DNA from: Bugula neritina
Taxonomy: Eukaryota > Animalia > Bryozoa
Length of the DNA stretch: 64,000 nucleotides
NCBI GenBank assembly: GCA_964035545.1
Contig: OZ037767.1
Location: 16,985,781-17,049,780 of the forward strand
Reading direction: 5' to 3'
In this document: positions 1 through 41,973 of the stretch, one piece after another
Layout: each line of letters opens with the position of its first letter
Position numbering within the stretch: the first letter of the stretch is position 1
Program-made: the position numbers and the translations under genes
The notes under the pieces: model-generated
What the model was told of the DNA's origin: nothing
Database searches by the model: none
What the model saw: the letters and a program-made list of their open reading frames with translations, nothing else

Positions 1-1897
1 TGCTGTATATAGTATTACTACTCTGTGATATACTGTACATAGTATTACTACTCTGTGATATACTGTACATAGTATTACTACTCTGTGATATACTGTACAT
101 AGTATTACTACTCTGTGATATACTGTATATAGTATTACTACTCTGTGATATACTGTATATAGTATTACTACTCTGTGATATACCGTACATAGTATTACTA
201 CTCTGTGATATACTGTATATAGTATTACTACTCTGTGATATACTGTATATAGTATTACTACTCTGTGATATACTGTACATAGTATTACTACTCTGTGATA
301 TACTGTACATAGTATTACTACTCTGTGATATACTGTACATAGTATTACTACTCTGTGATATACTGTACATAGTATTACTACTCTGTGATATACTGTACAT
401 AGTATTACTACTCTGTGATATACTGTACATAGTATTACTACTCTGTGATATACTGTATATAGTATTACTACTCTGTGATATACTGTATATAGTATTACTA
501 CTCTGTTATATACTGTATATAGTATTACTACTCTGTGATATACTGTATATAGTATTACTACTCTGTGATATACTGTATATAGTATTACTACACTGTGATA
601 TACTGTACATAGTATTACTACACTGTGATATACTGTATATAGTATTACTACTCTGTGGTATACTGTATATAGTATTACTACTCTGTGATATACTGTATAT
701 AGTATTACTACTCTGTGATATACTGTACATAGTATTACTACTCTGTGATATACTGTATATAGTATTACTACTCTGTGGTATACTGTATATAGTATTACTA
801 CTCTGTGATACACTGTATATAGTATTACTACTCTGTATATAGTATTACTACTCTGTGATATACTGTATATAGTATTACTACTCTGTGATATACTGTACAT
901 AGTATTACTACTCTGTGATATACTGTACATAGTATTACTACTCTGTATATAGTATTACTACTCTGTGATATACTGTATATAGTATTACTACTCTGTGATA
1001 TACTGTACATAGTATTACTACTCTGTGATATACTGTATATAGTATTACTACTCTGTGATATACTGTATATAGTATTACTACTCTGTGATATACTGTATAT
1101 AGTATTACTACTCTGTGATATACTGTATATAGTATTACTACTCTGTGATATACTGTATATAGTATTACTACTCTGTGATATACTGTACGTAGTATTACTA
1201 CTCTGTGATATACTGTATATAGTATTACTACTCTGTGATATACTGTATATAGTATTACTACTCTGTGATATACTGTACGTAGTATTACTACTCTGTGATA
1301 TACTGTATATAGTATTACTACTCTGTGATATACTGTATATAGTATTACTACTCTGTGATATACTGTACATAGTATTACTACTCTGTGATATACTGTACAT
1401 AGTATTACTACTCTGTGATATACTGTACATAGTATTACTACTCTGTGATATACTGTATATAGTATTACTACTCTGTGATATACTGTATATAGTATTACTA
1501 CTCTGTTATATACTGTACATAGTATTACTACTCTGTGATATACTGTATATAGTATTACTACTCTGTGGTATACTGTATATAGTATTACTACTCTGTGATA
1601 TACTGTACATAGTATTACTGCTCTGTGGTATACTGTACATAGTATTACTACTCTGTGATATACTGTACATAGTATTACTACTCTGTGATATACTGTATAT
1701 AGTATTACTACTCTGTGATATACTGTACATAGTATTACTACTCTGTGATATACTGTACATAGTATTACTACTCTGTGACATACTGTATATAGTATTACTA
1801 CTCTGTGATATACTGTACATAGTATTACTACTCTGTGATATACTGTACATAGTATTACTACACTGTGATATACTGTACATAGTATTACTACTCTGTT
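1..1897. repeat. 30-bp tandem minisatellite (TACTGTAYATAGTATTACTACTCTGTGATA), intronic, ending at a splice acceptor
   Basis: About 63 near-identical units. The last unit runs into TTAACAG (AG 1901-1902), the acceptor of the exon at 1903. The array is truncated by the window start. Confidence 0.97.
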
Positions 1898-4900: not shown

Positions 4901-7260
4901 GAGCCACGTTTAATATATATACTCTTGTCATCTATAGATCTACCACTAGCCTCGCTGTCAGCCACTTCTTATATGGTGACGGTCCGAACTCGAACCGCAG
5001 TTCCAACCTTGACTCTGTTTCCACTTCCTCTCTGGAATCTGTCCATAGCTCGGCTCTCGGCTATACAACCACGACCAGTGTCGATGATTATTCACCTCAG
5101 CCAGATGTCCGGGGATGGACTCTCAGTCCAGTACACAGTTTCACCTTCTCTGGGAGTTCCAACTCTGAGAGTAATCATGAGACTTTCGTCAAAGAACACT
5201 TCGAGCCAAGGTTAGAACCTCACCATATGCTGTTTCCTGCCTGTATCACTTGTCAGCGTAGAGAAAGCTGCTAACAGAAAGTGTAGATAGCATAGCAGCT
5301 GATTCATTATTTCTCATTTTAGTACATCCAGACCACAACCACGCTGGAGAACTCTAATGTCTGGGATGGCTGTTCCTGTTAGCAGACTCATTAGGAGGCC
5401 TGTCACCATTCCTCCCACCGTCAGGTATGTCTACCACCAAGTTATGTAACATTGTCTGGTACGTAATTTTCTCTACAGCTGTATAGTTATGTCAACCACT
5501 AAGTTATGAACTCCCTTCAATGTTGAAGTGAGTTGAGTTGTAGTTGTAGTTGTAGTTGAGTTGTAGTTGAACTTGTTGTTATATTCTCCAGACCGGCTGC
5601 CCACGCTGTGTATGTTGGTGGAGCACCTCCAGCAGTGCAGTGTGTTACCGCTTTCCTGCCCACTCCACGGCTCTATGGAGCACCAGCCATGAGAGCTAGC
5701 TCAAGCAGAGGGTTGAATGGAGCGAGGTAGGACTAAAACATGTACAGTTTTGGTGGGAAAAAGTATTTCATAATAAAATAAGTCTACTGGTGTATTTGAA
5801 ATGTGCTGTGTAGTAAATTATTTACGTCATAAACAGAATCTGGTTATATTTATATTATTATAATACAAACATGATCCAATTATATTCTGTCTTTCACAGC
5901 ACTGTCACCCGATGCCTTTGCCGAAAGGAAGTTCCGGCAAGCTCGATGCTGAAGCGGTATAGCTCAGAGCACGTGTTTGACCTTGGCCCTTCTACTAAGA
6001 GATCGTCTGACACCTATTCGAGATCTAGTAGAAAAGGGTGAGCACATTTTCTCAACTGTGTTTGCGTTTAAGATTCAGAGCTGTGAATTATATAACTTAT
6101 GCTCTCTCAATACATACAACTCTCAATATAGGTGTAATCCATTGGGTGGGTGTACCAATACTTATACTGAAGTTGAGTGTAAACTTGTTCATTCTACTAT
6201 GCTCATGATATATTAGTTTGAGCTGACTACAACTACGTGTCTGTATTTTTAGCGCCAATCTTCTATGTTCATGTCACGGGGAGCACACCGACTGTGAGGA
6301 AAGGTAAGAACTGTAGAGTTTGCTTTCTAATGAGGGATATGTGTTGCAATGGTTGTATTTCATTTCTACCACTGAACCTTTTATTTGTAAAGTTTTCCAG
6401 CTGTTTGTCAGCATGCATTGGAGTTATTTCCTGTTGAGGTACAGCAGCTGAGTAGTCAGTATTGCTGTGAAATCTGAACATCAATAGAGTTGTAATACTT
6501 TAGTTTGATACCTTTTAGCACAATCTCTGAGAGTGAGTCACTGCAAGCCTGTGCTGGAAAGGGTAAGCAGCCGGCTAAGAAACCGCTTAGAAAGGGACCT
6601 CTTAAACAAGGTTCTCTCACAAAAGGACCTCTTAAGAAGGGACCTCTCACAAAAGGACCTCTTAAGAAGGGACCTCTCACAAAAGGACCTTTCAAAAACG
6701 GACCTCCTAAAAAAGGACCTCTTACAAAAGGACCTCTCACAAAAGGACCTCCTAAGAAAGGACCTCTTAATAAAGGACCTCTTACAAAAGGACCTCCTAA
6801 AAAGACACAGCTTAGAAAGTCATTAACTAATGGCAGAGCACCAGCTTCCAACCGCCAAGCTGGAGGTGTTGGAAATCGTCTGGGGCCTCCAAAAAGAGGA
6901 GCTTTGAGCAAAGCACCAAAATTAGGGGCAAAGACCCCTGTAGCTCCTAAAAGAAATGCACCTAGTTCCGGGAGCAAGCTAGGCTCACGTGCTGCAGCGT
7001 CTAAAAAGAAGCAGTCATGTCCTGATGTGTTCACCAGGCTGTCAAGTACACCTCTGCGCGGCGCACCCAGGCGGCTGAACAGCACTCCAGCTGTCAAGCC
7101 ACCAGTCAAGTCAAAAACGTCTCGGCCAGCAACCTTACTTAGTCAGCAGTCCTCTTCTGCCCCACAGCGCAAGATGAGGCAGTTGAATGCCTCGAAAGCA
7201 TCGGCTAATAATCTAGAGAAGCGTTGTCCAGTGCTGGAACAGCGCATTCGCAAATCATAG
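1903..7260 (+). CDS. Uncharacterised low-complexity protein, Ser-rich with a Lys/Pro-rich basic C-terminus; 3' part, 10 exons visible, about 1190 aa
   Basis: Exons 1903-2061, 2408-3907, 4152-4514, 4723-4827, 4938-5210, 5323-5424, 5592-5726, 5900-6037, 6253-6303 and 6519-7260 are all bounded by AG/GT. They splice into one open frame that links ORFs 2397-3929, 4078-4518, 4864-5274 and 6505-7260. Stop TAG at 7258-7260; AATAAA at about 7484. No family recognised. Confidence 0.75.
2420..3700 (+). repeat. Coding repeats in the 1500-bp exon: 24-bp SLSLSPP(R/L) units and about 13 60-bp (20-aa) units
   Basis: SLSLSPP(R/L) about x5 at 2420-2545. Then recurrent units resembling SLAASLGxPPSPGTPSALSSACSS, one Cys each, about 2920-3700. 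Confidence 0.85.
6590..6803 (+). repeat. 15-bp coding repeat giving 14 K-G-P-x-x pentapeptides
   Basis: AAAGGACCTCT(T/C)ACA-type units; translation KGPLK QGSLT KGPLK KGPLT ... KGPPK in ORF 6505-7260. Confidence 0.92.
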
Positions 7261-7721
7261 TCTCCCGAACTTCTCAGTCCGAGTTGTTTGGTGGTAGACT
7301 GTTGTTGGTTGCAGTTATCCTTGTGTAATGTGTCTCATTGTGCAGGTGGAATACAATGTATCTCATCCATTGATGTCTCTGATTCTGTTGGCTTGTACAG
7401 CCGCTACTTCTACTTTTACTGCTACTACTATTACTACTGCGCACACTACTCAGTACACTAAGCCTGAGGATGACTGGATCATCAATAAAGAGCTGGACTC
7501 TACAAATACAGCAAACCTCTGAACGACGTGAATGGTTCATCTACTAAGGGTAGATGCGCCTCGTCCCGTAGTGATGCTGTGGTTCACCAGGCACATCAAG
7601 ACGGTCATCTGATTACTGGTTCTTGAGAAATGGTCAGGTAGCTAGATAGAGACACTAAACTCTGCAGCTCACCAACATTTCTCATTCTCTCCCCTTTCGG
7701 CACATTTTCTTTCGCTATTCA

Positions 7722-10700
7722 AACCTTTATTTCTTCTCCTCTTTGATGAAAGAATATAACTCAATGTGACTGGTGATCTTTATTAGTAAAGGTAAGCTTT
7801 TCTCTCTGTTTGTATTTGTTTATGCTCTTGCTGTTGATTACAAAATCAATATGTATTTAAGTCAATTACAAGATCTGCTAATTTACTAATATAAAGAGAT
7901 ATTTATTAAAGATTAGTGTGAGCAGCAATCTTTTTTTCTGAACAATAGCAGGCCAGCTATGTTTTAAATATATATATATTGTTGTAGATTTATTTCGAAA
8001 AATGAATATTACACTACGGCTGGTGTCCTCACATATTTAGTTGGGTTAAATGAAGATTATTCTCTGAAACAGTTTTGCACCTCAGACCTTTACTAGTTGG
8101 TTCCACTAAAACGCACAAAGAAGTATTGGCCAACAACTTTGCTTAGTCAGCAGTCCCCTTCTGCCCCACAGCGCACGGTGAGGCAGTTGAATGCTTCGAA
8201 AGCATCAGCTGCTGATTGAGAAGAGCATTGCCTTGTGCTGGAAAAGCGCGTAGCAGAATAGAGCAGAGCTGGACTCTACAAATACAGCAAACTCTGAACG
8301 ACGTGAATGGTTCATCTACTAAGGGTAGACGCGCCTCGTCCCGTAGTGATGCTGTGGTTTACCAGGCACATCAAGACGGTCATCTGATTACTGGTTCTTG
8401 AGAAATTATCAGATAGCTAGATAGAGACACCAAACTCTGCAGCTGACCAACATTTCTCATTCTCTCCTCTTTCGGCACATTTTCTTTCGCTATTCCTTCT
8501 TCTCTCTGGTTGAATTTGACTGAGGATCTGTATTAGTGAAGGTAAAGGTAAGCTTTTCTCTAAATTTTAAAACATTATTTTCTGTTTGTATCTTTTTTTA
8601 CTATAGAAACGCCACCTCTTGCTGCTTAGTACAAAACATGCATTTCGGTCAATTGCAAGATTTGCTAACTCACAGATATGAAGGGTTAAATACTAAAGCT
8701 TGATGTCAACAGTAATCCATTTTTCTTTCTTAACAAAAACAGGCCAGCTATGCATATTTTATTATTAAATTATATATTTTGTTGTAGATTTATTTCAGAA
8801 GAATGAATATCACACTAAGGCTGGTATCCTCACATATTTGGCTGAGTTGAATGAAGATTATTCTCTGGAATAGTTTCACACCTCAGGACTTTACAGAAGA
8901 AACAAACGTTCTGTTAAGAACTTCTTTCTGTTGGGCAAATGTCTGAATATTCATCACTCGAGATCACAATTGCACCTGAACTTCTGAATTTCAAGCTGAC
9001 TGCAATACTGACTCAAGCTTGGCAGTGTTCAGGTAAGCTTTTTTAATATTTCTTTTTTCTAATTATCTACATCGTGACTGAGTAAAATTTAGTTAGAATA
9101 CTTTTTATAACTTTTTTGAGCCAATTATGATTACAAGCTTATAGAAAATATACTTAGTTTAATATTTATGCACACTTTTCATCATCATTACCTATACTGG
9201 TAATCAATCTTGTAGATGATACAAATCCTTTTAAGGCTGGTAAAAACACTACTAGGTGTGCATTGGATGAGCAACATATTCCTCATTCTCTACTCTGTAT
9301 GTTGACATTCACACATCTACATCTTAGTAAACTGAAGAGTAGTTTATTAGTGGATCTTCTTAAAAATCCTCTACAATAAATACTCGGCTGGACACACCAT
9401 GTCTTTCACTGTTGGTCAGATGACTCCAAAACTCCATATAGAGGTGAGTCCTTCTTCTATATTCTCTTAGCATTTTGTTTCTTGACTTCCTATAATATCC
9501 GGTTAGAAGGTTTCTCAGCATGTTTCTGTCAGTGTTTTTAAATGCATACTTTTTAACTTTTCTCTCCTATCATGCATAGAACGTTCTTTTAAAGGTTGTT
9601 GATACAATTTTTAGAGAATAGTTTAATTTCTGCACCTAATAGACATATTAAATATTATAGATGGTGATATCACTTGTTGGCTGGTACAATACTACATTGT
9701 TAGTGGGTTCTCAACTCTGCAAATTTGCACTTCTGGTGCATCTCTCCTGGATTTCAAGTAGACGGAACAGTATTTTACTTCTCAAAACATTTACTAGATT
9801 GCATTTCTCAATGAGCCAACAGAACATGTCTCCAATTCTTATTTTCGAATTTGGGGATGGAAGAATTTAGGCTGGAGTTGAGTCAGATGTGGATCATCTT
9901 ACTAACATAGAACATTCTATTCTACCAGAGCAATGGTGAGTTTGTGAAATTCTTCTAAAAACTGTGATCTGCTGTGAGGACAGACTTGTGTGAGTATTCG
10001 ATGGCAATAGTTGACGTAATTCTTTCAAGAGTTAAAGTTGCTGTGGTAAATGATTATTAATATGTTATGATGATTTTTGCAGAGTCTCTCACTGAATCTA
10101 TATTACTTGTCTGACTGGTACAATCAATGATAGATGATGATTCCACTTTCTTCTCCTTATAAATGTCTGGATTCTATTAATAGACTGTCACAGATATCTG
10201 CTGGTCTCAGAGCCTCTCCACTGGCAACTCTGTTCAGAGTTTAACTTCTTCCTATCTTGTTATAATATAGGTGAGTTCATGTAGTAGCAGATAAGGCACA
10301 ATTTAATTTCTCTCATTTCCATTATCATTGCACAATGGTCAGGCTGTCTATAAGTTTGACTATGAAGATGTATTATAAGTTCTATCAGAAACTATTATAT
10401 CTTGCTCAGGCACTTCAGTAAAACAATATTAAGCTAGTTAATATCAAACAGGTTTAAAAGTTTGAGTTGTCTACAGCATTGCTATTTCATCGAAACTTAT
10501 GCTTCAACATTCTTATATGACTTTTTAGTTTCTGCACACATCAGACAAGATCTTCATCTTGATTTCTCACAATACTTGCTGGGCTGAGATAAAACCCGTT
10601 TACATATTCTGTTGAGAACTTCTCACTTTCTGTTCTGCAAGCTTCATCACTCGAGATCACAATTGCACCTGAGCTTCTGAATTTACAAGTAAACTGAGTC

Positions 10701-13700
10701 AACGTTACAGAACTTTATCAAAGTAATATACTCAAGTTTCCACTTGCACTTGGCTCAGGTAAGTTAGTTTTAGTTTTGTTTGCCACAGGTCAATTTTTAT
10801 AGTTTTCAAATTGTTTTAGTAATTTTGTGCGTCAACTTAGATTACAAGCTTTGAGAAGAGATGCTAAAATAAAATATTATGTTAAAAATTATGTTTTATC
10901 ATCACTTATATTCTATAATAATTATATAACATTTTGTAGATGCGGTACAAAATCCTGTTTGGCTGGTAAAAACACTTCCACATTCTTATTGGACTACAAT
11001 TATTTCTGCACTTCTGAATTTTAAGTAAATCTCCATCCTACTGTGTTCAAGCCTGAGAAGTAAGTTCATTTAAAGAGTTATTATTTCTGTTTTCTGAGTT
11101 AATGCAGTTTTGGCACTTCTGGTTAATTAATATGGATCAATGTTCAGTGGCGGAAATATTAAATTAATTCTTTAAACTAGCTTCTAATCATTAGTTATAG
11201 CCAGTTAGGAACTCTTGTAGGTGATACAAAATCTTGGCTGGCTGGTGAAAACAGACAAGATCTTCTCTTTGACATGTCACAATACTGGTTGGGCTGAAAG
11301 CAACACTTTAATGTTCTGCTGAGAATTTTATCATAACTTCCACATGCTTTCTTCAAGTATTCATCACTTGAGAACTTGGCACATTCCAATTTCAAGTCAA
11401 TAAACAGTTCATGTCTACAGTTTTTAAGATATGCAGAACCTTTATTCCTTCTTCTCTCTGGTTAAAGAATATAACTCAATGTGACTGGTGATCTTTATTA
11501 ATAAAGGTTAGCTTTTCTTTCTGTTTGTATTTGTTTATACTCTTGCTGTTGATTACAAAATTAATATGTGTTTTAGTCAATTGCAAGATCTGCTAGTTTA
11601 CTAATATAAAGAGATATTTATTAAAGATTGGTGTGAGCAGCAATCTTTTTTTCTGCACAATAGCAGACCAGCTATGTTTTAAAAATATACATATTGTTGT
11701 AGATTTATTTCGGAAGAATGAATATTACACTAAGGCTGGTATCCTCACATATTTGGTTGGGTTGAATGAAGATTATTCTCTGAAACAGTTTTGCACCTCA
11801 GACCTTTACTAGTTGGTTCCACTAAAACGCACAAAGAAGTATTGGCCAACAACTTTGCTTAGTCAGCAGTCCCCTTCTGCCCCACAGCGCAAGGTGAGGC
11901 AGTTGAATGCCTTGAAAGCATCGGCTGCTGACCGAGAAAAGCATTGTCTGGTGCTGGAAAAGCGCGTAGCAGAATAGAGCAGAGCTGGACTCTACAAATA
12001 CAGCAAACTCTGAACGACGTGAATGGTTCATCTACTAAGGGTAGATGCGCCTCATCCCGTAGTGATGCTGTGGTTTACCAGGCACATCAAGACGGTCATC
12101 TGATTACTGGTTCTTGAGAAATGATCAGATAGCTAGATAGAGACACCAAACTCTGCAGCTGACCAACATTTCTCATTCTCTCCTCTTTTGGCACATTTTC
12201 TTTCGCTATTTAAACCTTTATTCCTTCTTCTCTCTGGTTGAATGTGACTGATGATGTTTATTGGTAAAGGTAAGCTTTTCTCTAAATTTTAAAACATTAT
12301 TTTCTGTTTGTATATTTTTATACTATAGAAACGCCACCTCTTGCTGCTGATTACAAAACACCCATTTTGCAAGAATTGGTAATTCACAGATATAAAGGGT
12401 TAAATACTAAAGCTTGATGTAAACAGCAATCCCATTTTTCTTGCTTAACAAAAACAGGCCGACTGTGCATATTTTATTATTAAATTATAGATTTTATTGT
12501 AGACTTATTTCGGAAGCATGAATATCACTCTAAGGCTGGTATCCTCACATATTTGGCTGAGCTGAATAAAGATTAATCTCTGGAATATTTTCACACCTCA
12601 GGAGTTTACAGAAGAAACAAAACTTCTGTTAAAAACTTCTTTCTGTTGGGCAAACGTCTGAATATTCATCACTCGAGATCACAATTGCACCTGAACTTCT
12701 GAATTTCAAGCTGACTGCAATACTGACTCAAGCTTGGCAGTGTTCAGGTAAGTTTTTTTTAATATTTCTTTTTTCTAATTATCTACATCGTGACCGAGTG
12801 AAATTCATTTGAGATAGTTTTTTTCTAATTTTTTTGGGCCACTTAGGATTACAAGCTTATAGAAAATATACTAAGTTTAATATTTATGCACACTTTTCAT
12901 CATCATTACCTATGCTGTTATTGAATCTTGTAGATGATACAATCCCTGTTTGGCTGGTAAAACACTTCCAGATGTGCATTGGATGAGCAACATATTCCTT
13001 ATTCTCTACTCTGTATGTTGACATTCACACATCTACATCTTAGTAAACTGAAGAGTAGTTTATTTGTGGATCTTCTTAGAACTCCTCTACAATAAATAGT
13101 CGGCTGGACACACCATGTCTTTCACTGTTGGTCAGATGACTCCAAAACTCCATATAGAAGTGAGTCCTTCTTCTTCATTCTCTTAGCATTTTGTTTCTTG
13201 AATTCCTATAATATCTGGTTAGAAGGTCTCTCAGCATGTTTCTGTCAGTGTTTTTAAATGCATACTTTTTAACTTTTCTCTCCTGTCATGCATAGAACGT
13301 TCTTTTAAAGGTTGTTGATACAATTTTTACATAATAGTTTAATTTCTGCACCTATAAATATAGACATATTAAATATTATAGATGGTGATATCACTTGTTG
13401 GCTGGTACAATACTATAACATTGTTGGTGGATTCTCAACTCTGTATCTCTCCTGGATTTCAAGTAGACGGAACAGTATTCTACCTCTCAAAACAGTTACT
13501 AGATTGCATTTCTCAATGAGTCAACAGAACATGTATCCAATTCTTATTTTCGAATTTGGGGATGGAAGAATTTAGGCTGGAGTTAAGCCAGATGTGGATC
13601 ATCTTACTAACATAGAACATTCTATTCTACTAGAGCAATGGTGAGTTTGTGAAATTCTTCTAAAAATCTGTGATCTGCTGTGATGACAATCTTGTGTAAG

Positions 13701-15230
13701 CATTCGATGGCAATAGTTGACGTAATTCTTTCAAGAGTTAAAGCTGCTGTGGTAAATGATTATTAATAGGTTATGATGGTTTTTGCAGAGTCTCTCACTG
13801 AATCTATGTTGATGACAATATCACTTGTTCAACTTGATAGATGATGGTTATAACAGCTGATGATTCCTCTTTCTTCTCTTAAACATCTGCTACTCAATAT
13901 CATAATTATTCTGCACTTTCTTTCTGTATTCTATAAATAGACTGACACAGATATCTGCTGGTCTCAGAGTCTCTCCACTGACAACTCTATTCAGAGTTTA
14001 ACTTCTTCTTATTCTGTTATAATACAGGTGAGTTTATGTAGTAGCAGAAGGCACAATTTAATTATTCTAATTTCTATTGCATGGTGGCAGGGCATATCTA
14101 TAAATTCAATTATGGAGATATATTATAAATTCTATTAGAAATTCTTTACAGATATTTATATCGTGTGCAGGCACTTCAGTTATACAAGATTAAGGTTTTA
14201 TGGCATCTAACAGCTTTAAAAGTAGTTTAAGGTTTCTACAATATTGTCACTTCATTAAAACCTATACCGAAACATTCTTATATAACTTTTAGTTTCGGCA
14301 CACATCAGACAAGAGTTTCATCTTGGTTTGACAGAAATGGGCTGAAAGAAACACATTTATATTCTGCTGAGAACTTTTTCTTTTCTGTTCTCCAAAATTC
14401 TGAATATTTATCATTCGAGATCACAATTGCACCTGAACTTCCGAATCTACAAGTAGACTGAGCTAGTGTCTACAGTACTTACTCAAACTTCCACCTGCAC
14501 TTGGCTCAGGTAAGTTATTTTTAGTTTTTTGTTGCCTATTATCTACATGGTGACTGAGTGAAGGTCAATTTATATAGTTTTTAATATTTTTGGTAATTTT
14601 TTGAGTTAATTAGAATTAGAAGCTTTGAAATGAGATGCTAAAATAAAATACGTTAAAAATTATGTTTTATCATCACCTATATTCTATAATTATTATATAA
14701 CATATTTTTTGTAGATGCGGTACAAAATCCTGTTTGGCTTGTAAAAACACTTCCACATTCTTATTGGACTAAAATTATTTCTGCACTTCTGAATTTCAAG
14801 TAGACTTCCATCCTACTGTGTTCAAGCCTGAAAGGTAAGCTTGATTGAAGAGTTATTTTTCTATTATCTGTGTCATGATAGACTGAGTTGATGCAGTTTT
14901 GGCACTTCTGATTAATATAGGTCAATGTTCAGTGGGGGGGGGGGAAACACTAAATTAGTTATTTAAACTAGCTTTTAATCATTAGTTATAGTCAGTTAGA
15001 AACTCTTGTAGGCAATACAAAACCTTGGCTGGCTGGTAAAAACAGACAAGATCTTCTCTTTGACATGTCACAATACTGGATGGGCTGAAAGCAACACTTT
15101 AATGTTCTGCTGAGAATTTTATCATAACTTCCACATTCTTTCTTCAAGTATTCATCACTCGAGAACTTGGCACATTCCAATTTCAAGTCAATAAACAGTT
15201 TATGTCTACAGTTCTTAAGATATGCAGAAC
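7722..15230. repeat. Tandem segmental duplication, two copies of about 3.7-3.8 kb (7722-11437 and 11438-15230)
   Basis: Collinear matches, e.g. AAGAATATAACTCAATGTGACTGGTGATCTTTA at about 7740 and 11465; ORF pairs 9661/13312 and 11195/14992. Further partial, reshuffled copies at 15400-17500. Confidence 0.93.
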
Positions 15231-17506
15231 TTTAGAACTTTGTAGAGGGTCGAAAGGTGATTTTCTTAGATTGTTGTTTCTGGCTGAAAGTTTGTTGTTG
15301 CAATAATTATTTTGAGTTCTTTTGATTGCTCAAATATATAGCCGAGCTTGAAAATACTGAAACGAAATATTCAAAAGTTCTGTAAATCATTACATATACT
15401 GTTACTGAATCTTGTAGATGGTACAAACCCTGTTTGGCTGGTAAAACACTTCCAGATGTGTATTGGATGAGCAACATATTCCTCATTCTCTACTCTGTAT
15501 GTTGACATTCACACATCTACATCTTAGTAAACTGAAGAGTAGTTTATTAGTGGATCTTCTTAGAACTCCTCTACAATAAATACTCGGCTGGGCACACCAT
15601 GTCTTTCACTGTTGATCAGATGACTCCAAAACTCTATATAGAGGTGAGTCCTTCTTCTACATTCTCTTAGCATTTTGTTTCTTGACTTCCAAATATCTGA
15701 TTAGAAGAACTTAGTAGTTTTCGTTTTTGGATGCTATCCTGTAAAGAGCAGTTTAATTTCTGCACCTATAACCGTTTTTCAAGAATGGTGTAATTTTTGC
15801 TTATGACTGTCATTAAATCTTTGTAGTTGGCTGGTACAAACTTAGAACTCTTCTACAACAAACACTAATCAGACGACTCCAAAACTTTATAATTATAATG
15901 GTGAGTCTTTGTTCTACATTTTCTTAAAATTCTGCTCCTTGACTTCCAATCGTATCTGACTAGAAGGTCTCAGTTAAAGTATTGTTTTTGTCGATTTTTT
16001 GGATGTAAATTTTTATAGAAAAGTTTAATCTTTGCACCTAAACATTTTTGAAGTATGGTATAATTTCTGCACATGACTGTCATTAAACCTTGTAGATGGT
16101 GAGATCACTTGTTGGCTGGTAAAAACACTTCTACATTGTTATTGGAAGATCTGATCCTCTCTGCAAATTCACTTCTGGTGCATCTCTCTTTGATTTCAAG
16201 TAAACAGTAACTCTACTTCTCAGAACATCTCCAAGACTGTTTGTCTTAGATAATTATCCAACACAAATATTTGGAGTGGATCAAGTGAAACACACTTCTA
16301 ATGTATTTCATACTTCAGTTTCTCTATTTTGGAGCTGAATGAATCCCTTCTTGGCTTCAACTGAACACTAGATGTGGCTCAACTGACCATAACTTGGTAG
16401 ACTCTACTCTACTAGGGTAATGGTGAGTTTATGTAATACTTCTATACTATCAGTTTGTATCAGATTATGGAACTCAAGTGGCATGCTTACAGTACGTGTG
16501 TCTAGTTTAGTGTTTGTATGCTGAGATATATAGTAAAATATAGTATAGTAAAATATATAGTAAAACATATTATAGTAAAATATGTAGTAAAATAGTATAG
16601 TAAAATAGTGTAGTAAAACCGTGTAAACTTTGCGTCTTCTGGTTTCAATTTTTTACACTAAATTATCTAAGAATTTACCAAGCAGGGTTTAAAATTTGGG
16701 AAGTCATAGAAAATTTAAAACTTGGCATAGTAATACAATATAAAGCTTCTATTACACCAATTATGTTTACAATAGGCATATATATGTAATGCTTTCAGAA
16801 TATTGTTATTCTAGCAAAACTCCTCTCAGATTCTTTTCATTTGACTTTTTAGGTTCTGCACACATTCCATAAGATCTTCATCTTGACATGTCATAATACT
16901 TGCTGGGCTGAAATAAACGTTTATATGCTGGTAAAAGTTTCTTCCTTTCTGTTCTGCAAACTAGTTGAAGAAGATAACTCAATGTGACTGGTGATCTTTA
17001 CCGGTAAAGGTAAGCTTTTCTCTCTGTCTGTATTTGTTTATACTCTTGCTGCTGATTACAAAATGAAATAAGGCTTTTTAGTCAATTGCAAGGTCTGCTA
17101 ATACACTAATATAGAGGGTTATTTACTAGAGACTGATGTGAACAGCAATTCGTTTGCTTTCTGAACAGAAGCAGACCACCTATGTTATTGAAATATATAT
17201 TTTGTTGTAGAACTATTTAAGAAGAATAAATATCACACTAAGGCTGGTATCCTCACATATTTGGCTGAGTTGAATGAAGATTATTCTGTGGAATATTTTC
17301 ACACCTCAGGACTTTACAGAACAAACAAATCTCCATGTTCTGTTACGAACTTCTTTCTGTTCTGCAAACTTCCAAATATTTATCACCGAGATCACAATTG
17401 CACCTGAACTTCTGGATTTACAAGTAGACTGAGCCAGAGTCTGCAGTACTTGCTCAGAATATTATACCAAAACTTCCACCTGCACTTCTTTGAGCTCTAA
17501 GGTAAG
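7792..17506 (+). ncRNA. Putative multi-exonic long non-coding transcript (or extended 3' UTR) built of about 20 homologous exon+intron cassettes
   Basis: Regular alternation of GTAAG/GTGAG donors (7792, 8548, 9033, 9444, 9936, 10271, 10759, 11060, 11507 [GTTAG], 12270, 12748, 13160, 13641, 14028, 14510, 14835, 15644, 15901, 16423, 17010, 17502) with T-rich YAG acceptors (7987, 8787, 9215, 9660, 10082, 10528, 10939, 11220, 11702, 12502, 12933, 13381, 13788, 14292, 14714, 15011, 15417, 15826, 16095, 16852, 17210). All are on +, and there is no long ORF. Confidence 0.5.
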
Positions 17507-17967
17507 CCTATATAGTTTCTATTATCTATCTTAGTGAAGGTTTAGCATGGATTGTAAATTATTTTAGCTAATCAGACATACCTATTTTTTAAATGTGTTG
17601 TAAATATTTGAAACAATTTTCAGAATGACCTACACTGTTCATGGATGTTTGTTTGTTTCAGTTTATAAAACATTGTTTCCCTATAGAGTTTTCAAACTTG
17701 TTGATATGATCGTTTGATCTCCCTGTGCGTGATGGCGGCATGAGTTATTTGGCAGATGGAGAATATATTTTTTTTATGACGTCTACTAGCTCACTGAATT
17801 TCTGCTCAAACCTTTAATCAAAACCAAAAGTGAGTTATTGGAAAATTGGCATTTTGAGCAGTTTACTTATAGTTATCTACTACTAGATAATAGCATAATG
17901 TATCAATCATTAGATGATATAATTGCTTTTTATGTTCCATTATTTGTATAAAGCCATTTGCAACTAA

Positions 17968-18362
17968 GTACACAGTGTTTTCATGGAGATACTTTGTATA
18001 CATGCGTTGTCATAGTGATACTATGTATACACGTGTTGTCATGGTGATACTATGTACACAGTGTTGTCATGGTGATACTATGTATACATGTGTTGTCATG
18101 GTGATACTATGTATACATGTGTTGTCATGGTGATACTATGTATACATGTGTTGTCATGGTGATACTATGTATACATGTGTTGTCATGGTGATACTATGTA
18201 TACATGTGTTGTCATGGTGATACTATGTATACATGTGTTGTCATGGTGATACTTTGTATACATGTGTTGTCATAGTGATACTATGTATACATGTGTTGTC
18301 ATAGTGATACGTTGTATACATGTGTTGTCATAGTGATACTTTGTATACATGTGTTGTCATGG
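17968..18362. repeat. 29-bp tandem repeat (TGTGTTGTCATGGTGATACTATGTATACA)
   Basis: About 13 copies seen directly. Confidence 0.95.
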
Positions 18363-20449
18363 TAATGAAAGTTTGTTTCTAGAAAGCAGGTACTAGCCAG
18401 GACCACCAGCTGACAGGTGAAGGTAGTAGTAGTAGTCAACAGACATAGTTTGGTCACATGTATTAATACTTCCTGTTACATCTTGCGACAGTTTAAATAA
18501 AATACACTGGTATATTTAGCACTGGGTGAAATTTTAGAGTTCTTAGTTTAAATGTGTGACCGGACAATCTTTGATTTTTGTTAATTTATAATTTTCAGCT
18601 GCTTTTTAATTTACAACATTTATACAATGATTGAGAAAGTCCCAGCAAATTCAGCATAAATTCTTATAATTGGTACCAATTTAGCCGTTAATGAGTTAGC
18701 TAAGCGAAACTCTACAACCTCATGCTTTCCAACTTGGGTAGCTGTTGAGATGCTGGGGGAATCTGATGCATGATTGTAGTTAATGTCTGTTGGAATGTAG
18801 ATAGGCAACTCCTATATTGACGATTCACAAAAGTAAAATGAAGTTTTGATCTAGGAAAGTAACTGTAGAATATGATGATATGTTCTTCAGTCATAAACAG
18901 TGGATAGTGTGTTGTATTTCAGTGACTTCCTTTCACAGTCAGCCACTATCAGAGTAGTCTTCACACCTCATATCAACATCTGTCTCTCTAGAGCAGCTGT
19001 ACATAGTATAACTGAGTGTATTTATTACTCTGGTCTACCATGCAGAGATGGGAATTACCTTTTAATGAGGTGAAGACTTTTACTTTCTAATATGTTACAG
19101 TAACTCTCTGAAGGTATTTTATTGTAACACACTATTGTTTAAAGCTTAAACTCAACCATTTGAGTTCTGTTATTGGTAGTGATCAACGAGCAGAGGTTGA
19201 TTTGATTCTTGATATTTATATACTGAGTTTTAGCAATTATTGAATAACTTTAAATTTGTAGTCATGCACTGCAGGAAAATCAACCACTCGGTTTACGGAA
19301 CTGAAACAGTTTATGAAATAAAATCAAAACCTTTAATTGGCCAGTCATTGACAGCTCTAAAATATCCAACATGGTAGATAAACTTTCCCAGATAATCTCT
19401 CTGCACTGGACAGTCACACAGTACAACCTCTGTGAGCGTCAACCAACTCTGACAGGGACAGATAATTTCTAATCAGAGGTAAATTGGGCTGTTGGTTTTC
19501 CTGTTATTTATATAATAGTTTGCGTGAATTCACATTTGCCCCGCAGATAGCTAAGGCACTACTTATCTTAGAACTGTCAGCATTAACATTACTATCAGCT
19601 ATAATAGTGAAGATTTATTTAGGCTGAGCTCATTTCTATTGTAGAAAATTCCGCAGCAACTTTTATCACAGATCTCTTATCTATTACCTTTTATCTCATA
19701 TAATAGTTTCTTCTGGAGTTCACCAGGAAACTGTTGCTCTCAATGCTCTCTACCATGTCTGTAGACATCAGTGTGAAATGGCCCTCAGCCCTGGTGATAT
19801 ATGCATCAATACTTAACACTTGCTTCATAAACATAAACATAATTTTCTGCATGTTATTTGTTGGCTAAGTTGCAACATTAAGGTCATTAGTTGATTTTTG
19901 TTTAGAATGTAATATTATGGTTTTTAATCGACTTTAAAGTTTGTAAATACTAATTTATATGGCAGATAATTTTTTCATCTTATAAGATTGTGAAGCACAA
20001 CAGAAAATATTAGACTTTTAAGAGACTTTGCTTTATAAGCCTCGTGCAGGTTATTGTAGCCTCAGCTATCCGTTAGGCTTTTGTTTTAAGAAACTTCCTA
20101 ATTTGGATGAACGTAGAGCAAGTAGTGAAATGAAGTTCTCTCAGCAGAACTTGAATCTAATGCTATACACAGTTTTCAAAGGATTGACTCTAATAGGCTA
20201 TATATAACATGGCTTCATTGATGGCCTTAATTTGACAATAATTAGAGTGCTCAGTGAATTTTAGAATGCGAAGTGGCTAAAAGCTGAATGGATTAATTTT
20301 ATTTGGTAACATAACAGAAAATCACTAAAACTACTATTCATAAATAGGCAGTTTTACTTAAAGTAGTAAAAATGGTATCTAGAGTCTAAGAACCAGTTTA
20401 ATTAAACCTTTTCTATTGATTACATCTAAAGCTATTTTCTAGAATAAGT

Positions 20450-22090
20450 TTGCTGTAGCTGTCTAAAATTGTTTATTGGGCTGTTTTAAATTACTACATT
20501 CTAGGATAATTTTACACGCTGTAATATTTGAAATATACACTACAGCTTATTGTAGTAAACTTCTATATAGTCAAACAATTGAGTGAAATTTATTAGCTAA
20601 GTTTTTATCTAAAGTAGGCACTAGAATGTTGAAAAGTAGAGCCAGATATTTAAAGTTTAATGAAAATGATGCCCAATAAGTATATCTTTCAGTAACTAAA
20701 CTAATATCTACAAATACAGCTAACAGCTGCCCACAGCACGAAGGCCTATCAACAGCTAACTAACTGTAACTAGTAGCACTAATTTATCTTTTTTACGGAT
20801 ATTCCAACTCTCATTGGCTATAATAGTAAACAATATACATGTATTTAATTTGCTATATGTTGTATAATTTGAATATGCATATATACCATTGCTTATAACA
20901 CAAACACACACCTACACCACACACGCACCACTCACCTACACTACACACACGCACACTACAGACAGACACCCAGACACCACACACACACAGCTGAAGTACA
21001 TGCGTAACCGTAGCATAAGCCTAGCTGTAATATAGTCATAATTCATAACTGTAGTATAGACATATAACTGTAATATAGACATATAGCTGTAACATAGTCA
21101 TATAGCTGTAATATAGTCATATAGCTGTAATATAGTCATATAGCTGTAATATAGTCATATAGCTGTAATATAGTCATATAACTGTAATATAAACATAGTG
21201 ATAGTAGAAGTATAGCTGTAATATAGTCATATAGCTGTAACATAGTCATATAGCTGTAACATAGTCATATAACTAATATAGTCATATAGCTGTAACATAG
21301 TCATATAGTTACAATATAGTCATATAACTAATATAGTCATATAGTTACAATATAGTCATATAGCTGTAATATAGACATATAGCTGTCATATAGTCATATA
21401 ACTGTAATATAGTCATATAGCTGTAATATAGTCATATAGCTGTAATATAGACATATAGCTGTAACATAGACGTATAGCTGTAATATAGTCATATAGTTGT
21501 AATATAGACATATAGCTGTAATATAGTCATATAGCTGTAATATAGACATAGTGATAGTAGAAGTATAGCTGTAATATAAGCATAATTGTAGTGTAGACAT
21601 AGCTATAGTATAAACTTATATGTATGTATGTAAATAATATATGTATATTCAAATAATACAACATATGGTATCTTATATGTATATTGTTGACTAAAAGCTA
21701 TAATTATTATAGAGCCCATAACAGTTAAAATATCTGTAAGAAATAAATTAGTGCTACTAGCTACTAGTTAGTTAGCTGTTAATATTGGTAATAGTGCTCT
21801 TAGCAGCTGTTAGCTGTATTATTAGACATTAGTTTAGTTACTGAAAGATATACTTATTCATGAGCATCATTATCATTATTATAAACTTTAAATATCTGGC
21901 TCTACTTTTCAACATTCTAGTGCCTATTTTAGATCAAACTTTTGCTAATAAACTCCACACAATTGTTCCACGCTATAGCAGTTTACTCTGATAAGCTCCT
22001 GTGTATATTTTCAAATATTACAACACATAAAGTTATTTTAGCATGTAATAGTTTAATGCAGCCTAATAAACAACTCTAAACAGCTACAAA
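20450..22090. mobile_element. Foldback/MITE-like element: about 440-bp imperfect inverted arms enclosing a CA tract and a 19-bp tandem array
   Basis: Arms at about 20450-20885 and 21635-22090; 20615-20658 is the exact reverse complement of 21883-21926. No transposase, and no TSD resolved. Confidence 0.65.
21020..21600. repeat. 19-bp tandem repeat (TAGCTGTAATATAGTCATA)
   Basis: About 30 variant copies between the inverted arms. Confidence 0.93.
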
Positions 22091-23559
22091 AAATAGAATA
22101 AGTGTCAAGAGTTTAATTAAACTGTTATTGCTATATACATGCATGTGTAAAACTTTAGAGACATAACTGCAGTTTAAGCATAGCTGTATAAGTGTATAGT
22201 ATAGACATATAGCTATATAGTGTAAGTTTAGCTGTATTATATAGTATATACATATTTAACCTGTAAGCTCTTACTTGTACACTTGTATTAAGTTAGTCTT
22301 ACTTATACCCATCTTGGTTAATCAGATACAGATATTTAAGCTGGTCAAATACCAGCAAAATATTGCTAGCACATGTATAAAAAAGTTACTGTAAAATGGA
22401 CCAGTTATAATTTGTAAGTAGCCTATATATTGAAACAGGCCTGTGCTTATGTAGTATGAATATATCAAGTAGTTTTGACCACTTGGCATTCTGATTTCGA
22501 TAAGACCTGTCGCCAGTATTATTACTGATGGTGATTTGTAACTAATATTTTCAAATCTGTGAAAACTTTTCAGTTTAGTTTGGATTAAAATTTCATAAAA
22601 ACCTGTTTACTCCTGACTTCTGATTGAGGTTAATCAAATAACATCTTTATGCATTGCAAAGTCGTTGGAGCCTAAAGGAAAGTTGACATTGCTAGAACAA
22701 CTTAAGATATGAAAGGAACAAAATGTTAGATAACTTTTAGAATCTAATATTTTTTGTTGTGCAAACTGTATTTTTCAATTTATTTTTATTTTCTGTTTAA
22801 GTCATGGTATTTTTATACGAAAAAATAGTCAAGTAGTTTGATTCAGTTTCAATAAAAAATTAAATTAGAACATCCATGAAACAATGCTGAGTTGTATTTG
22901 TTTATTAAATGCAAACTTTTTACAAAAAAACCAATTCAGGGTGACCTGTAATTATTAAGCCCTATGGTTCAAGCAATCTCGACAGGTTGTTGGAGTTGGG
23001 TGCTTATTTTATGAATTGCATCTTCGAAGCTTAAGATGCAGAAACCTTTACAGCATCATTTAGTCACTATTTTTATTGACTACAGACACTAGTCTACCGA
23101 TACTGTAATCACAAAACAATGCTGCATAAGCTATTTAATAGCTAGCCAAAAATTCACCATCACTAAAATATATTATGCTGAAAATGACTTCACATGCAGT
23201 TGCAATCTAAACATAGTCAACTGTCTGTTGTATTTCATTAGCAAAAAGATGCAATTTAAATGACAGCGCGTATAAATAGCAATACTGCTCAATAATTATT
23301 TTTACTCTCTTGGAATTTATTTGCATTTTAATAATGCATGTGTAGGAATATAATGAATGTAAATCGAGAGCACAAGAATAATGTCCTTTTTGTTCGTTCA
23401 GAATTGGGCACATTTTTAATATTTCGAGTTGTCTGTTCACTTTTGCGCATTTATAGACTTGGTTACGACAATTTAATCAATAAAATCTAGGTTGCGCGTT
23501 TGGTAAACTTTTGCTAAACGAAATTTTGCGAGAATCCGGTGAATGGCAACAAGATTGGA

Positions 23560-32796: not shown

Positions 32797-33324
32797 GCCG
32801 TGCTGTGTGTTGGTAACCAGCTGTTGTGAAGGTGATCAATATATGGCCACTCTCGGTGTATTCTTATATCATGACTCTTAGCAACCACTCAATAGTAACT
32901 ACGTTATCCAAGGAAAGTGTTGCTATGGTGATTATGTAAACAATGTTACTAACTTTCTTTTCAGGAGTTGCCTTTTCATAATATTATATACCTTTTGCTG
33001 CGCACTGCAGGCCACTTGTAATATAATCACCAGTTGCTATCATTTTTATATATTCTAGCGGCCATTTTGGGCTCGCCCATCTGTCGTCAAACCCGTTTTT
33101 ATGTTTCAAAGTTGTTTTTAGTTTTATAATGATAATGGGTTTTACTATATACTTTTTGCTACCCTCTGCCCTTTTGTGCTGTGGAATTTAAGTGTGTACA
33201 TTTTGTTATTTTGGAGTAGAGCCTATGAAATGGTGGTTTATGTTGCGTTGACCGTACCATTTACCTGCATCCGCCATGTTAGTCATACCGTGAATATCAA
33301 CAAGTATAGTATTATATATTCTAC

Positions 33325-33330
33325 AATAAA
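33325..33330 (+). terminator. Candidate polyadenylation signal of PPP2R5
   Basis: AATAAA about 640 bp after the stop codon and before the convergent gene. Confidence 0.4.
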
Positions 33331-33606
33331 TATACCATCTCCAGTATAATTGTTATAATGTATACTCTGATGCAGATATTGTGTGCTGTATCTGTCATCA
33401 CACAGGGTAGGTTATAGCAAAGGGAAGACAACACTGAATTTGTTGATAGACAATACTAAATGTTAGATATACAGCAGCAAAGGAGAGACAACTTACTATA
33501 ACTTCATATTTTAATAGAATTTTGGGTTAATATTGCAGCTAATTAAGCAGCATCAATACTATATAGTCAACACGAGTCATTTAGTTCAGTCATCTCAGCT
33601 TAGAGA

Positions 33607-41315
<7,709 letters not shown>

Positions 41316-41973
41316 CCTTTCTATTTTCCTCAACTAAGAATATTGTACTACTTCTAGACAAGCACTGATGCTAACACTGTCTGAAGCATCTCAACAGCTA
41401 CCTGGATGTGTTACAAGTTTCAGACAAGATGGGTGTATTTCAGTGTAATTAGAGTTGGCCTGGTGTTGAATTGTCCATTAAACAGGTATTACACTCTATG
41501 CTAAAGCTAAGTTGAATGATGGAGCAGCTGTGGGTTTATTGCTGCCAAGTTTCTAGGTCATCATTGCTGGCATTAGACCAAAACCCACACTAATGATGCA
41601 TGCAGCAGTTATTGTGTAGGTTTGTAACCCGCCCATGTTTTTTGAAGATCTGGAAACAGTTGTTTTACTCATCATAACTAGTAAGTTGTTCTGAGAAACA
41701 GAATTTATTTTTGAATGATTACTACAATTCAAATGTAATTACACATTAGAGCTGATGAAAACAATAAATTATCTTCAGCAGCAATATTTAAATAAATACT
41801 TTTTCTTATTTGATAAATTTTATACAAATATAAAAATAAATTAAATATATAGTCAACAGTTACAATACTTTTAGCCTTAGAATCAAGTGAAACTCAAAAC
41901 CGTTACAGGCTGGTCCTGTATAACGCTAGCAAATATATATGGACGGAGAAATGGCTGCGGCTTCAACAGGAAA

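Follow-up and report, generated by a model that had tools for sequence, protein, structure and literature searches.

A putative intron-rich, non-coding RNA tail built of duplicated exon-plus-intron cassettes in the bryozoan Bugula neritina

Introduction

What keeps a long series of splice sites in place in a region of animal DNA that has no usable reading frame? The question is raised by an array of about 10 kb in Bugula neritina, contained in a window of 64,000 nucleotides (contig OZ037767.1 of assembly GCA_964035545.1, positions 16,985,781 to 17,049,780 of the forward strand), which is the whole stretch analysed here and to which all positions refer. A sequence-only reading of the window had described about 20 exon-plus-intron cassettes on the + strand, amplified from one unit and selected for splicing rather than coding, and had proposed a scaffold-type lncRNA, a small-RNA host or an intron-rich 3′UTR as possible identities. 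The array was compared with two paralogous loci of the same chromosome (paralogs A and B) and with a second B. neritina assembly, GCA_010799875.2, which represents a diverged lineage.

Splice layout and coding capacity

Between 7792 and 17661 of the + strand, 22 intron-like segments of 147-430 nt with GT...YAG ends were placed by splice layout, and their homologous sites were then compared with paralogs A and B and with GCA_010799875.2. Introns 1-8 lie at 7792-7987 (aag/GTAAGC...TGTAG/a), 8548-8787, 9033-9215, 9444-9660, 9936-10082, 10271-10528, 10759-10939 and 11060-11220; introns 9-16 at 11507-11702, 12270-12502, 12748-12933, 13160-13381, 13641-13788, 14028-14292, 14510-14714 and 14835-15011; and introns 17-22 at 15257-15417, 15644-15826, 15901-16095, 16423-16852 (with a 13/27-nt minisatellite inside), 17010-17210 and 17502-17661. 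They alternate with 22 exon-like segments of 74-567 nt, without a usable reading frame. Donors are GTRAG in 20/22 cases, the others being the weak GTTAGC of intron 9 (GTTAG, 11507) and the weakest of all, GTGATT of intron 17 (GTGAT, 15257), for which both paralogs have GTAAAT; every acceptor is TAG or CAG, and GTRAGT occurs 15 times on the + strand vs twice on the - strand. The claimed layout of + strand cassettes with GTAAG/GTGAG donors and YAG acceptors is therefore confirmed. Exons are richer in GC than introns (means 0.378 vs 0.291, Mann-Whitney p=4e-8).

Past intron 22, the array may continue with a putative exon 22 of unique sequence (17662-17829, +), the splice sites of which persist in both paralogs at its two ends, a putative intron 23 (17830-18382, +; donor GTGAGT at 17830) that contains a 29-nt minisatellite, and a putative terminal exon (18383-18520, +), with a predicted end point and with an AATAAA at 18496-18501; the acceptor and the hexamer of the latter are likewise kept in paralogs A and B.

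The array exons are without protein-coding capacity, as had been claimed when reading frames were said not to be kept. No frame is free of stops in any exon of more than 74 nt, and the longest stop-free run measures 74 codons; a Pfam search with 10 array ORFs gave no match, and no 3-nt periodicity of substitutions was detected in the 19 exons tested, the exons being searched singly. A protein search with the exon-4 ORF returned no homologue. As a search for RNA evidence, look-ups in contigs of protein collections were blank for the exon-4 ORF, for a 3′UTR ORF (exact) and for a B. neritina array ORF, and two metagenome scans with the cores of the conserved exonic elements U and M3 (see below) found no match.

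Three coding candidates were rejected. A cluster of mutually exclusive exons of the Dscam type is incompatible with exon lengths of 74-567 nt and with the stops that interrupt every frame. On the minus strand, an ORF ('MNHSRRSE...') stays open wherever a copy retains that part of the 3′UTR; since its substitutions show no codon bias and mostly change the amino acid, it is considered a chance ORF. Nine-codon micro-ORFs (ATG...GGC TGG TAA) open many exons, and their ATG is not kept in GCA_010799875.2.

The upstream gene and the duplication history

The array begins directly downstream of gene X, coding for a low-complexity protein with KGPL repeats, whose last coding exon spans 6519-7260 (+; ORF 6505-7260, stop TAG at 7258-7260). 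The sole protein homologue is B. neritina EB796_001983, and the gene is bryozoan-specific. Differences in its coding exons are distributed over the three codon positions as 93/90/159, with an excess at the third position, vs 7/10/8 for the last part of the CDS (7112-7257, +), which is thus free of coding constraint. This CDS tail forms the 5′ edge of a duplicated unit, with copies at 8116-8249 (+; in exon 1, E1, with a premature stop) and at 11832-11965 (+; in E9).

E0 (7261-7791, +), a putative 3′UTR, occupies the interval between the stop codon and the first donor, and its first 120 nt or so (7261-7378) are almost identical to GCA_010799875.2. The first donor is located 531 nt past the TAG of gene X, and the one indication here that both belong to the same mRNA is the missing conserved poly(A) hexamer: the single AATAAA of E0, at 7484, is present in the window and in the paralogs and reads AATCAA in 4/4 copies of GCA_010799875.2, where no AATAAA or ATTAAA occurs in the 978 nt from the stop to the first donor.

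The first cassettes of the array are tandem copies of the gene X CDS tail, 3′UTR and first downstream intron. Indeed, in both E1 and E9 the opening part of the next exon is joined to copies of the CDS tail and of the 3′UTR, with a donor at the end; in GCA_010799875.2 there are four such CDS-tail/3′UTR units, the first copy having an earlier stop and a 10-nt deletion. A pseudogenised coding gene can be dismissed, as only 134 nt each of E1 and E9 stem from the neighbour's CDS tail and the splice sites and conserved blocks are not decaying.

On a larger scale, the segment 7722-11442 (+) was duplicated as 11437-15233 (+), with 86.5% identity over 3875 aligned columns, in agreement with the proposed 3.7-kb higher-order unit. 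Homologous exons of the two copies differ in length by -7, 0, 2, 16, -51, 13, 0 and 41 nt, so that frames are broken. The proposal that one single unit was amplified holds for the exons, 20/23 of which fall into one homology network, but not for the introns, which make up six families and two singletons.

Gene X and the array have been triplicated together on the same chromosome, as the window locus, paralog A and paralog B, in which 22, 14 and 13 intact donors were found, respectively. In paralog B, a 7.5-kb LTR element is inserted antisense in the equivalent of intron 6, within an intron and not an exon. An orthologous array is present in GCA_010799875.2, where the part of the locus within a 10-kb flank was seen. 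The origin of the first cassettes from gene X, the triplication and the orthologous array had all been missed by the sequence-only reading. A dispersed transposable element or satellite is ruled out, because four different queries match only the three tandem paralogous loci (contig C3).

Conservation of splice sites

All 38 alignable splice dinucleotides are kept in GCA_010799875.2, vs 59% of control GT/AG from the same alignments (Fisher p=3.6e-9); relative to paralogs A and B the figures are 44/44 vs 83% (p=4e-4). Since a single B. neritina site can be the counterpart of several window sites, these counts are not independent; for distinct sites, 27 donors and 28 acceptors of paralogs A and B and 12 donors and 12 acceptors of GCA_010799875.2 are all intact, and for these 24 distinct B. 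neritina sites the chance expectation is still about 0.59^24 = 3e-6. The conservation profile against GCA_010799875.2 follows the splice consensus: conservation falls to 31% three bases ahead of the donor G and four bases ahead of the acceptor junction, beside bases that are kept in 96-100%. Splice dinucleotides are thus better conserved than control GT/AG, and these findings show purifying selection on the canonical splice sites, in line with the selection for splicing claimed by the earlier reading.

The array could instead be a decaying by-product of a segmental duplication of the gene X 3′ end, with splice-like signals as mere relics; much exon sequence does drift, two donors are weak, the copy number differs between paralogs and the CDS-tail copies are broken. 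However, a divergence of about 21-27% predicts changes in about 40% of GT/AG, with 0/38 observed, the conservation profile tracks the splice consensus base by base, and long perfect blocks exist, which makes such a relic very improbable.

Conserved blocks in the exons

Exon interiors are 83.5% identical to GCA_010799875.2, vs 72.7% for intron interiors, the least conserved class. Three kinds of module recur, each conserved in GCA_010799875.2: the array of the window has three copies of element U, 13 of GGCTGGTA and five of M3. Element U, of about 125 nt, is located at 7515-7640 in E0 (+), where a 61-nt stretch (7553-7613) matches B. neritina perfectly, at 8291-8415 in E1 (+) and at 12007-12131 in E9 (+); its column identity is 93% across 10 copies, among which no compensatory pair was found, nor was a stable structure (z -0.65 and -1.39 for the two strands).

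The 13 copies of GGCTGGTA in array exons lie 2-31 nt past the acceptor; the whole 64 kb contains 14, and none of the reverse complement. It is kept in 12/13 copies in GCA_010799875.2, vs 27% of background exon 8-mers. GGCUGGUA recurs about 20-30 nt inside many exons, and TCATCACTCGAG...TTTCAAG lies at 8950, 10643, 12665, 14410 and 17387; the shared exon motifs previously claimed are therefore present, in 13 copies and at five sites. The motif M3 (about 45 nt) is found, always on the + strand, at 8950-8995 (E2), 10643-10684 (E6), 12665-12710 (E10), 14410-14446 (E14) and 17387-17419 (E21); its core is invariant in both lineages and occurs nowhere else in the 216-Mb genome.

Selection for splicing rather than coding thus describes the array in part: splice sites are kept and exons are non-coding, but the exons also hold conserved blocks. 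If a single transcript is assumed, the same conserved module would be repeated across several of its exons, as in FIRRE. Gene conversion, and not selection, may account in part for the high identity that old copies of U and M3 show inside a single genome.

Introns

The motif ATTATCTAC...GACTGAGT, said to be shared by the introns, does not have this distribution: it was found in 4/22 (introns 3, 11, 15 and 16), partially in intron 22, and not in the array of GCA_010799875.2. A selector or docking role is rejected for the same two reasons. The Rfam scan that had been suggested gave nothing at gathering thresholds over the whole window and, with E<=1 on 7000-18700, two sub-threshold matches (E about 0.1); when all 44 exons and introns were folded against shuffles, z averaged about 0 in the exons and +0.39 in the introns. 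Thus, a host gene for intron-encoded snoRNAs or miRNAs, with disposable exons, is the least probable of all identities considered: non-coding exons and conserved splice sites do resemble snoRNA hosts, but the Rfam and folding results, the weak conservation of intron interiors and the scarcity of the common motif argue against it.

Interpretation of the array

Since splice signals and a few short exon motifs have stayed intact in all three copies of the gene and in a diverged lineage of Bugula, the array very probably represents a genuine non-coding RNA tail that is heavily spliced. It is best read, with a probability that we consider fair though well short of certainty, as a + strand RNA that continues the gene X transcript as an intron-rich 3′UTR isoform; the linkage to the gene X mRNA is suggested by the position of the array next to the gene, by their joint duplication and by the missing conserved poly(A) hexamer. 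The array grew as exon-plus-intron cassettes were duplicated in tandem. Cassettes of the youngest type comprise the gene X CDS tail, 3′UTR, first downstream intron and start of the next exon, so that each duplication adds an internal exon already equipped with a functional acceptor and donor. Selection retains every splice site and a few exonic blocks (element U, GGCUGGUA and M3), the remaining sequence being left to drift and the cassette number to change. As sites and blocks are retained, the mature RNA would concatenate several copies of the same short modules in series, forming a multivalent platform for putative binders, and an exon-junction complex would be deposited past the stop codon at each junction. 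The two weak donors, at 11507 and 15257, sit uneasily with this scheme; moreover, a transcript with a stop codon followed by 22 junctions is an expected target of decay, an odd condition for a main isoform.

Among the other explanations, the one that survives best is a separate lncRNA of many exons, started between the gene X stop and 7792 and acting as a repeated-motif scaffold; it is possible, and clearly less probable than a continued gene X transcript. The conservation of splice sites and motifs fits it equally well, the AATAAA at 7484 could end the gene X mRNA before the array in the window and in the paralogs, and the 120 nt past the stop, near-identical between lineages, could be promoter-like. 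It is contradicted by the replacement of that hexamer in all B. neritina copies and the lack of another canonical one before the first donor there, by the absence of an acceptor between the stop codon and the first donor, and by the inclusion of the CDS tail in the duplicated unit.

Somewhat less likely still is an intron-rich 3′UTR in which the act of splicing is all that matters, exon-junction complexes past the stop holding the gene X mRNA under nonsense-mediated decay (NMD) and exons serving as splicing enhancers at most. The distance of the first junction from the stop, the perfectly kept splice sites, the resemblance of GGCTGGTA, at its fixed distance from acceptors, to a splicing enhancer, and the free variation of cassette number, as judged by the intact donors of the three loci, would all agree with it. 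However, one downstream junction should suffice for decay, and therefore the retention of all 22 would be left unexplained; furthermore, U and M3 are much longer and better conserved than any splicing enhancer requires.

The array may tentatively be regarded as an evolvable "cassette RNA", an idea that we consider rather unlikely as it stands: as splice-competent exon-plus-intron cassettes were gained and lost, the valency for putative binders would be adjusted, splicing would concatenate the modules, and U and M3 would change in concert across the old cassettes of each lineage because they co-evolve with the binder.

Comparison with known systems and significance

In lncRNAs of the FIRRE type, a repeated domain is spread across several exons. 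Similarly, short modules recur in many array exons, which suggests multivalent binding; unlike in FIRRE, with which the array shares no sequence, the repeated unit is a whole exon-plus-intron cassette and three different modules are involved. Host genes of snoRNAs, such as GAS5 and the SNHG type, have non-coding exons and conserved splice sites, as the array does, but the array introns are the least conserved class and contain no recognisable small RNA. To our knowledge, 3′UTRs that trigger NMD have one or few introns, unlike the array, with 22-23 that would belong to the same transcript. The array introns are located well over 50 nt past the stop and on the same strand, like 3′UTR introns that elicit EJC-dependent NMD, a subject of, e.g., bioRxiv 10.1101/677666.

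Multi-exonic intergenic lncRNA loci have GC-richer exons and are constrained at splice sites and enhancer-like motifs, other exon bases being free to drift, and their accurate splicing is apparently required (Haerty and Ponting 2015, PMC4338330). The array resembles them in the higher GC content of its exons, in the constraint on splice sites and enhancer-like motifs, in the drift of most other exon positions and in an apparent need for correct splicing. Unlike in those loci, its exons arose as tandem copies, both of one another and of the 3′ end of a neighbouring gene, the cassette number changes between paralogs and lineages, and it begins directly past a stop codon, without an evident separate start.

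If RNA data confirm it, the locus would be an unusually clear case, at the level of genome sequence, of a transcript without coding function that is retained because of its splicing and of a few repeated modules. It would also indicate a route by which such RNAs grow, as tandem duplication across a 3′UTR intron makes ready-made internal exons, and 22-23 junctions past a stop codon would represent an extreme 3′UTR architecture. The differing cassette numbers of the three paralogs and of the diverged lineage offer a natural experiment, and 22 precisely predicted junctions together with three defined motifs may be of practical value in a little-studied animal phylum.

Gene X and its downstream array

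The 22 intron-like segments placed at 7792-17661 on the + strand, downstream of the stop of gene X, very probably form a real and spliced array. Gene X itself is a multi-exon gene on the + strand, which enters the window (C3:16985781-17049780, C3 being contig OZ037767.1, within a 216-Mb animal assembly) from upstream; its last coding exon lies at 6519-7260, with a TAG stop at 7258-7260. The product is low-complexity and Ser-rich with KGPL repeats, a Pfam search of the protein gave no real domain, and its sole protein homologue comes from Bugula neritina. The exons are truly coding, since substitutions relative to the diverged B. neritina lineage (assembly GCA_010799875.2, contig VXIV02000218.1, handle L032) number 93/90/159 at codon positions 1/2/3 (p=1.6e-6). 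The tail of the CDS, with 7/10/8 differences by codon position, is without coding constraint, and in the first copy of the diverged lineage the stop comes earlier and 10 nt are deleted.

One intron of gene X (window 1-1896 and C3:16984433-16985780) is occupied by a minisatellite with a 30-nt unit, repeated more than 60 times; all three paralogs and the diverged lineage (L032:5192-5505) have it in the equivalent position, with a copy number that is very different among loci and an extent of about 5 kb in paralog B. Non-LTR retrotransposon fragments are also present in an upstream intron of the gene (L025:1980-3377, L025 being the handle of that locus), including one ORF that is endonuclease-like and another whose Cys/His pattern is PHD-like.

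Among the donors in the array, GTRAG accounts for 20, and GTTAG and GTGAT for one each; the acceptors are TAG or CAG without exception. Introns measure 147-430 nt and exons 74-567 nt, and the predicted junctions run from 7791|7988, 8547|8788 and 9032|9216 to 17501|17662. The strand bias of GTRAGT (15 on the + strand vs 2 on the - strand), the GC contrast between introns and exons (0.29 vs 0.38, p=4e-8) and the excess of T over A on the + strand, strongest in introns, fit an exon/intron layout on the + strand. The exons are non-coding, because each one longer than 74 nt is interrupted by stop codons in every frame, the Pfam search of the array ORFs returned 0 matches and codon periodicity of substitutions was seen in none of the exons. 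The array of exons and introns without reading frames proposed by the sequence-only reading is thus recovered, as 22 GT..YAG segments between non-coding exons; the motif that it considered common to the introns occurs in only 4 of the 22. Searches for transcript evidence in protein collections, made with array ORFs of both lineages, returned nothing, and neither did one exact look-up or two metagenome scans, each exon being searched individually by reference.

Copies of the array and retention of splice sites

Four different queries located copies at only three loci of C3, each on the + strand. They correspond to a unit of about 50 kb triplicated in tandem, which holds gene X (including the 30-nt minisatellite in its intron), the array and some 6 kb of downstream sequence; the PP2A-B56 gene starts only at about 23.8 kb, outside this unit. 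The paralogs share about 92-94% identity across the exons and introns of the array, and 96.7% across coding exons. In paralog B, the equivalent of intron 6 contains a 7.5-kb Ty3/gypsy-like LTR element in antisense orientation; the retrotransposon, at L023:3509-9974 of this paralog (C3:16939509-16945974), has long, open minus-strand ORFs of 354, 1437 and 357 aa, which are gag-like and protease-RT-RNaseH-integrase. The diverged lineage carries the orthologous gene and array (VXIV02000218.1, about 33,205-43,850, reverse strand); the cassette types there are the same but differently arranged, the CDS-tail/3′UTR unit has four copies, and identity over the aligned array is 79% overall.

No homologous splice site has been lost in paralogs A and B (27 distinct donors, 14 in A and 13 in B, and 28 distinct acceptors) or in the 10 kb of the diverged array that the count covers (12 distinct donors and 12 distinct acceptors). 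With one best alignment per window position, splice dinucleotides are kept in 44/44 cases against the paralogs, vs 83% of other GT/AG (p=4e-4), and in 38/38 cases against the diverged lineage, vs 59% of the remaining GT/AG within those alignments (Fisher p=3.6e-9); the sites are not fully independent, and with only the 24 distinct sites of that lineage the chance is about 3e-6. The per-position conservation profile matches the splice consensus: in the comparison with the diverged lineage, the intron GT, the A at the fourth intron base, the acceptor AG and its preceding pyrimidine are 96-100% kept, vs only 31% for each of two bases, one lying 3 positions before the donor G and the other 4 positions before the acceptor junction. 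Splice sites no better conserved than neighbouring bases had been named beforehand as grounds to abandon the array, and the opposite is clearly observed.

Conserved modules in the exons

Identity to the diverged lineage is 83.5% in exon interiors and 72.7% in intron interiors, and the excess in exons, concentrated in four kinds of blocks, suggests that the exons are under constraint also beyond their splice sites. The repeated modules are element U, GGCUGGUA and M3. The core of element U (7515-7640, + strand) includes a 61-nt block identical in the two lineages; over ten copies of both, column identity is 93%, with flanks at about 77%. Its six copies in the window genome all fall within the three arrays. 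It shows neither a significant fold nor covariation, and neither of its strands has a conserved ORF. In each of the four 3′UTR units of the diverged lineage, element U is separated from the donor-proximal part by about 320 nt that are absent from the window genome (L032:11152-11471 and equivalents).

GGCTGGTA has 13 copies in array exons, 2-31 nt past acceptors, and nine in the diverged array; 12/13 are kept, vs 27% of background exon 8-mers, and its fixed position relative to acceptors suggests a splicing enhancer. M3, of about 45 nt, is present in five exons; its 3′ core, CACCTGAACTTCTGAATTT, shows no variation across the two lineages and genome-wide is found only in the three arrays. The 5′ half of M3 has lineage-specific changes common to cassette classes older than the lineage split, which suggests that the copies evolved in concert, through gene conversion or co-evolution with a putative binder. 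A 37-nt perfect block is shared by E3, E11 and E17. A minus-strand ORF beginning MNHSRRSE (75-88 codons, window 7274-7540) is open in every 3′UTR copy of both lineages, including the four L032 copies; it was rejected as coding on its substitution pattern and probably stays open by chance, the stretch being richer in GC.

Origin of the cassettes

The array is built from the 3′ end of gene X itself. Self-comparison shows the final 134 nt of the coding sequence (7112-7245) repeated at 8116-8249 and 11832-11965, and the 3′UTR segment 7489-8093 repeated at 8265-8894 and 11981-12609, a source of the cassettes that the sequence-only reading overlooked; the 3.7-kb higher-order unit that it described is confirmed (7722-11442 vs 11437-15233, 86.5% identity). 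E1 (560 nt) and E9 (567 nt) each combine the opening part of the next exon with copies of the CDS tail and of the 3′UTR and with a donor, exactly the outcome expected of a tandem duplication that reached from the tail of the last coding exon, across the first downstream intron, into the opening part of the exon after it. Amplification of a single exon+intron unit, as first proposed, is supported in part: 20/23 exons belong to a single homology network, but the introns form six families and two singletons; no exon-to-intron homology was found within the array.

Nature of the transcript

Interpretations of the array as a dispersed repeat, a frame-preserving cluster of alternative exons or a decaying pseudogene were rejected. 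The small-RNA host suggested at the outset was likewise discarded: no Rfam match was obtained, folding z is about 0 and introns are the least conserved class.

A 3′UTR extension of gene X appears somewhat more likely than a separate lncRNA. No acceptor intervenes between the stop and the first donor, the CDS tail is inside the duplicated unit, and gene and array always travel together. In the diverged lineage AATAAA and ATTAAA are absent from the 978 nt before the first donor, and the sole AATAAA ahead of the array in the window (7484) is AATCAA there. The 3′ end of the array plausibly comprises a putative exon at 17662-17829, an intron at 17830-18382 and a last exon from 18383 onward with AATAAA at 18496, all on the + strand and with signals kept in paralogs A and B. 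The putative last intron holds a 29-nt minisatellite of 14 copies (17963-18363), minisatellite arrays being present in many introns of the window. Downstream of the array, an inverted repeat of about 400 nt (arms 20454-20884 and 21713-22092, about 80% identity), either a foldback or MITE-like, flanks a 19-nt minisatellite at 21045-21610 and is also present in paralogs A and B.

Splice sites and a small number of repeated modules are in all likelihood what the array has been preserved for. This agrees with what is known of multi-exonic lncRNA loci on which selection is related to splicing (PMC4338330), to which the array would add a tandem-cassette architecture with changing copy number.
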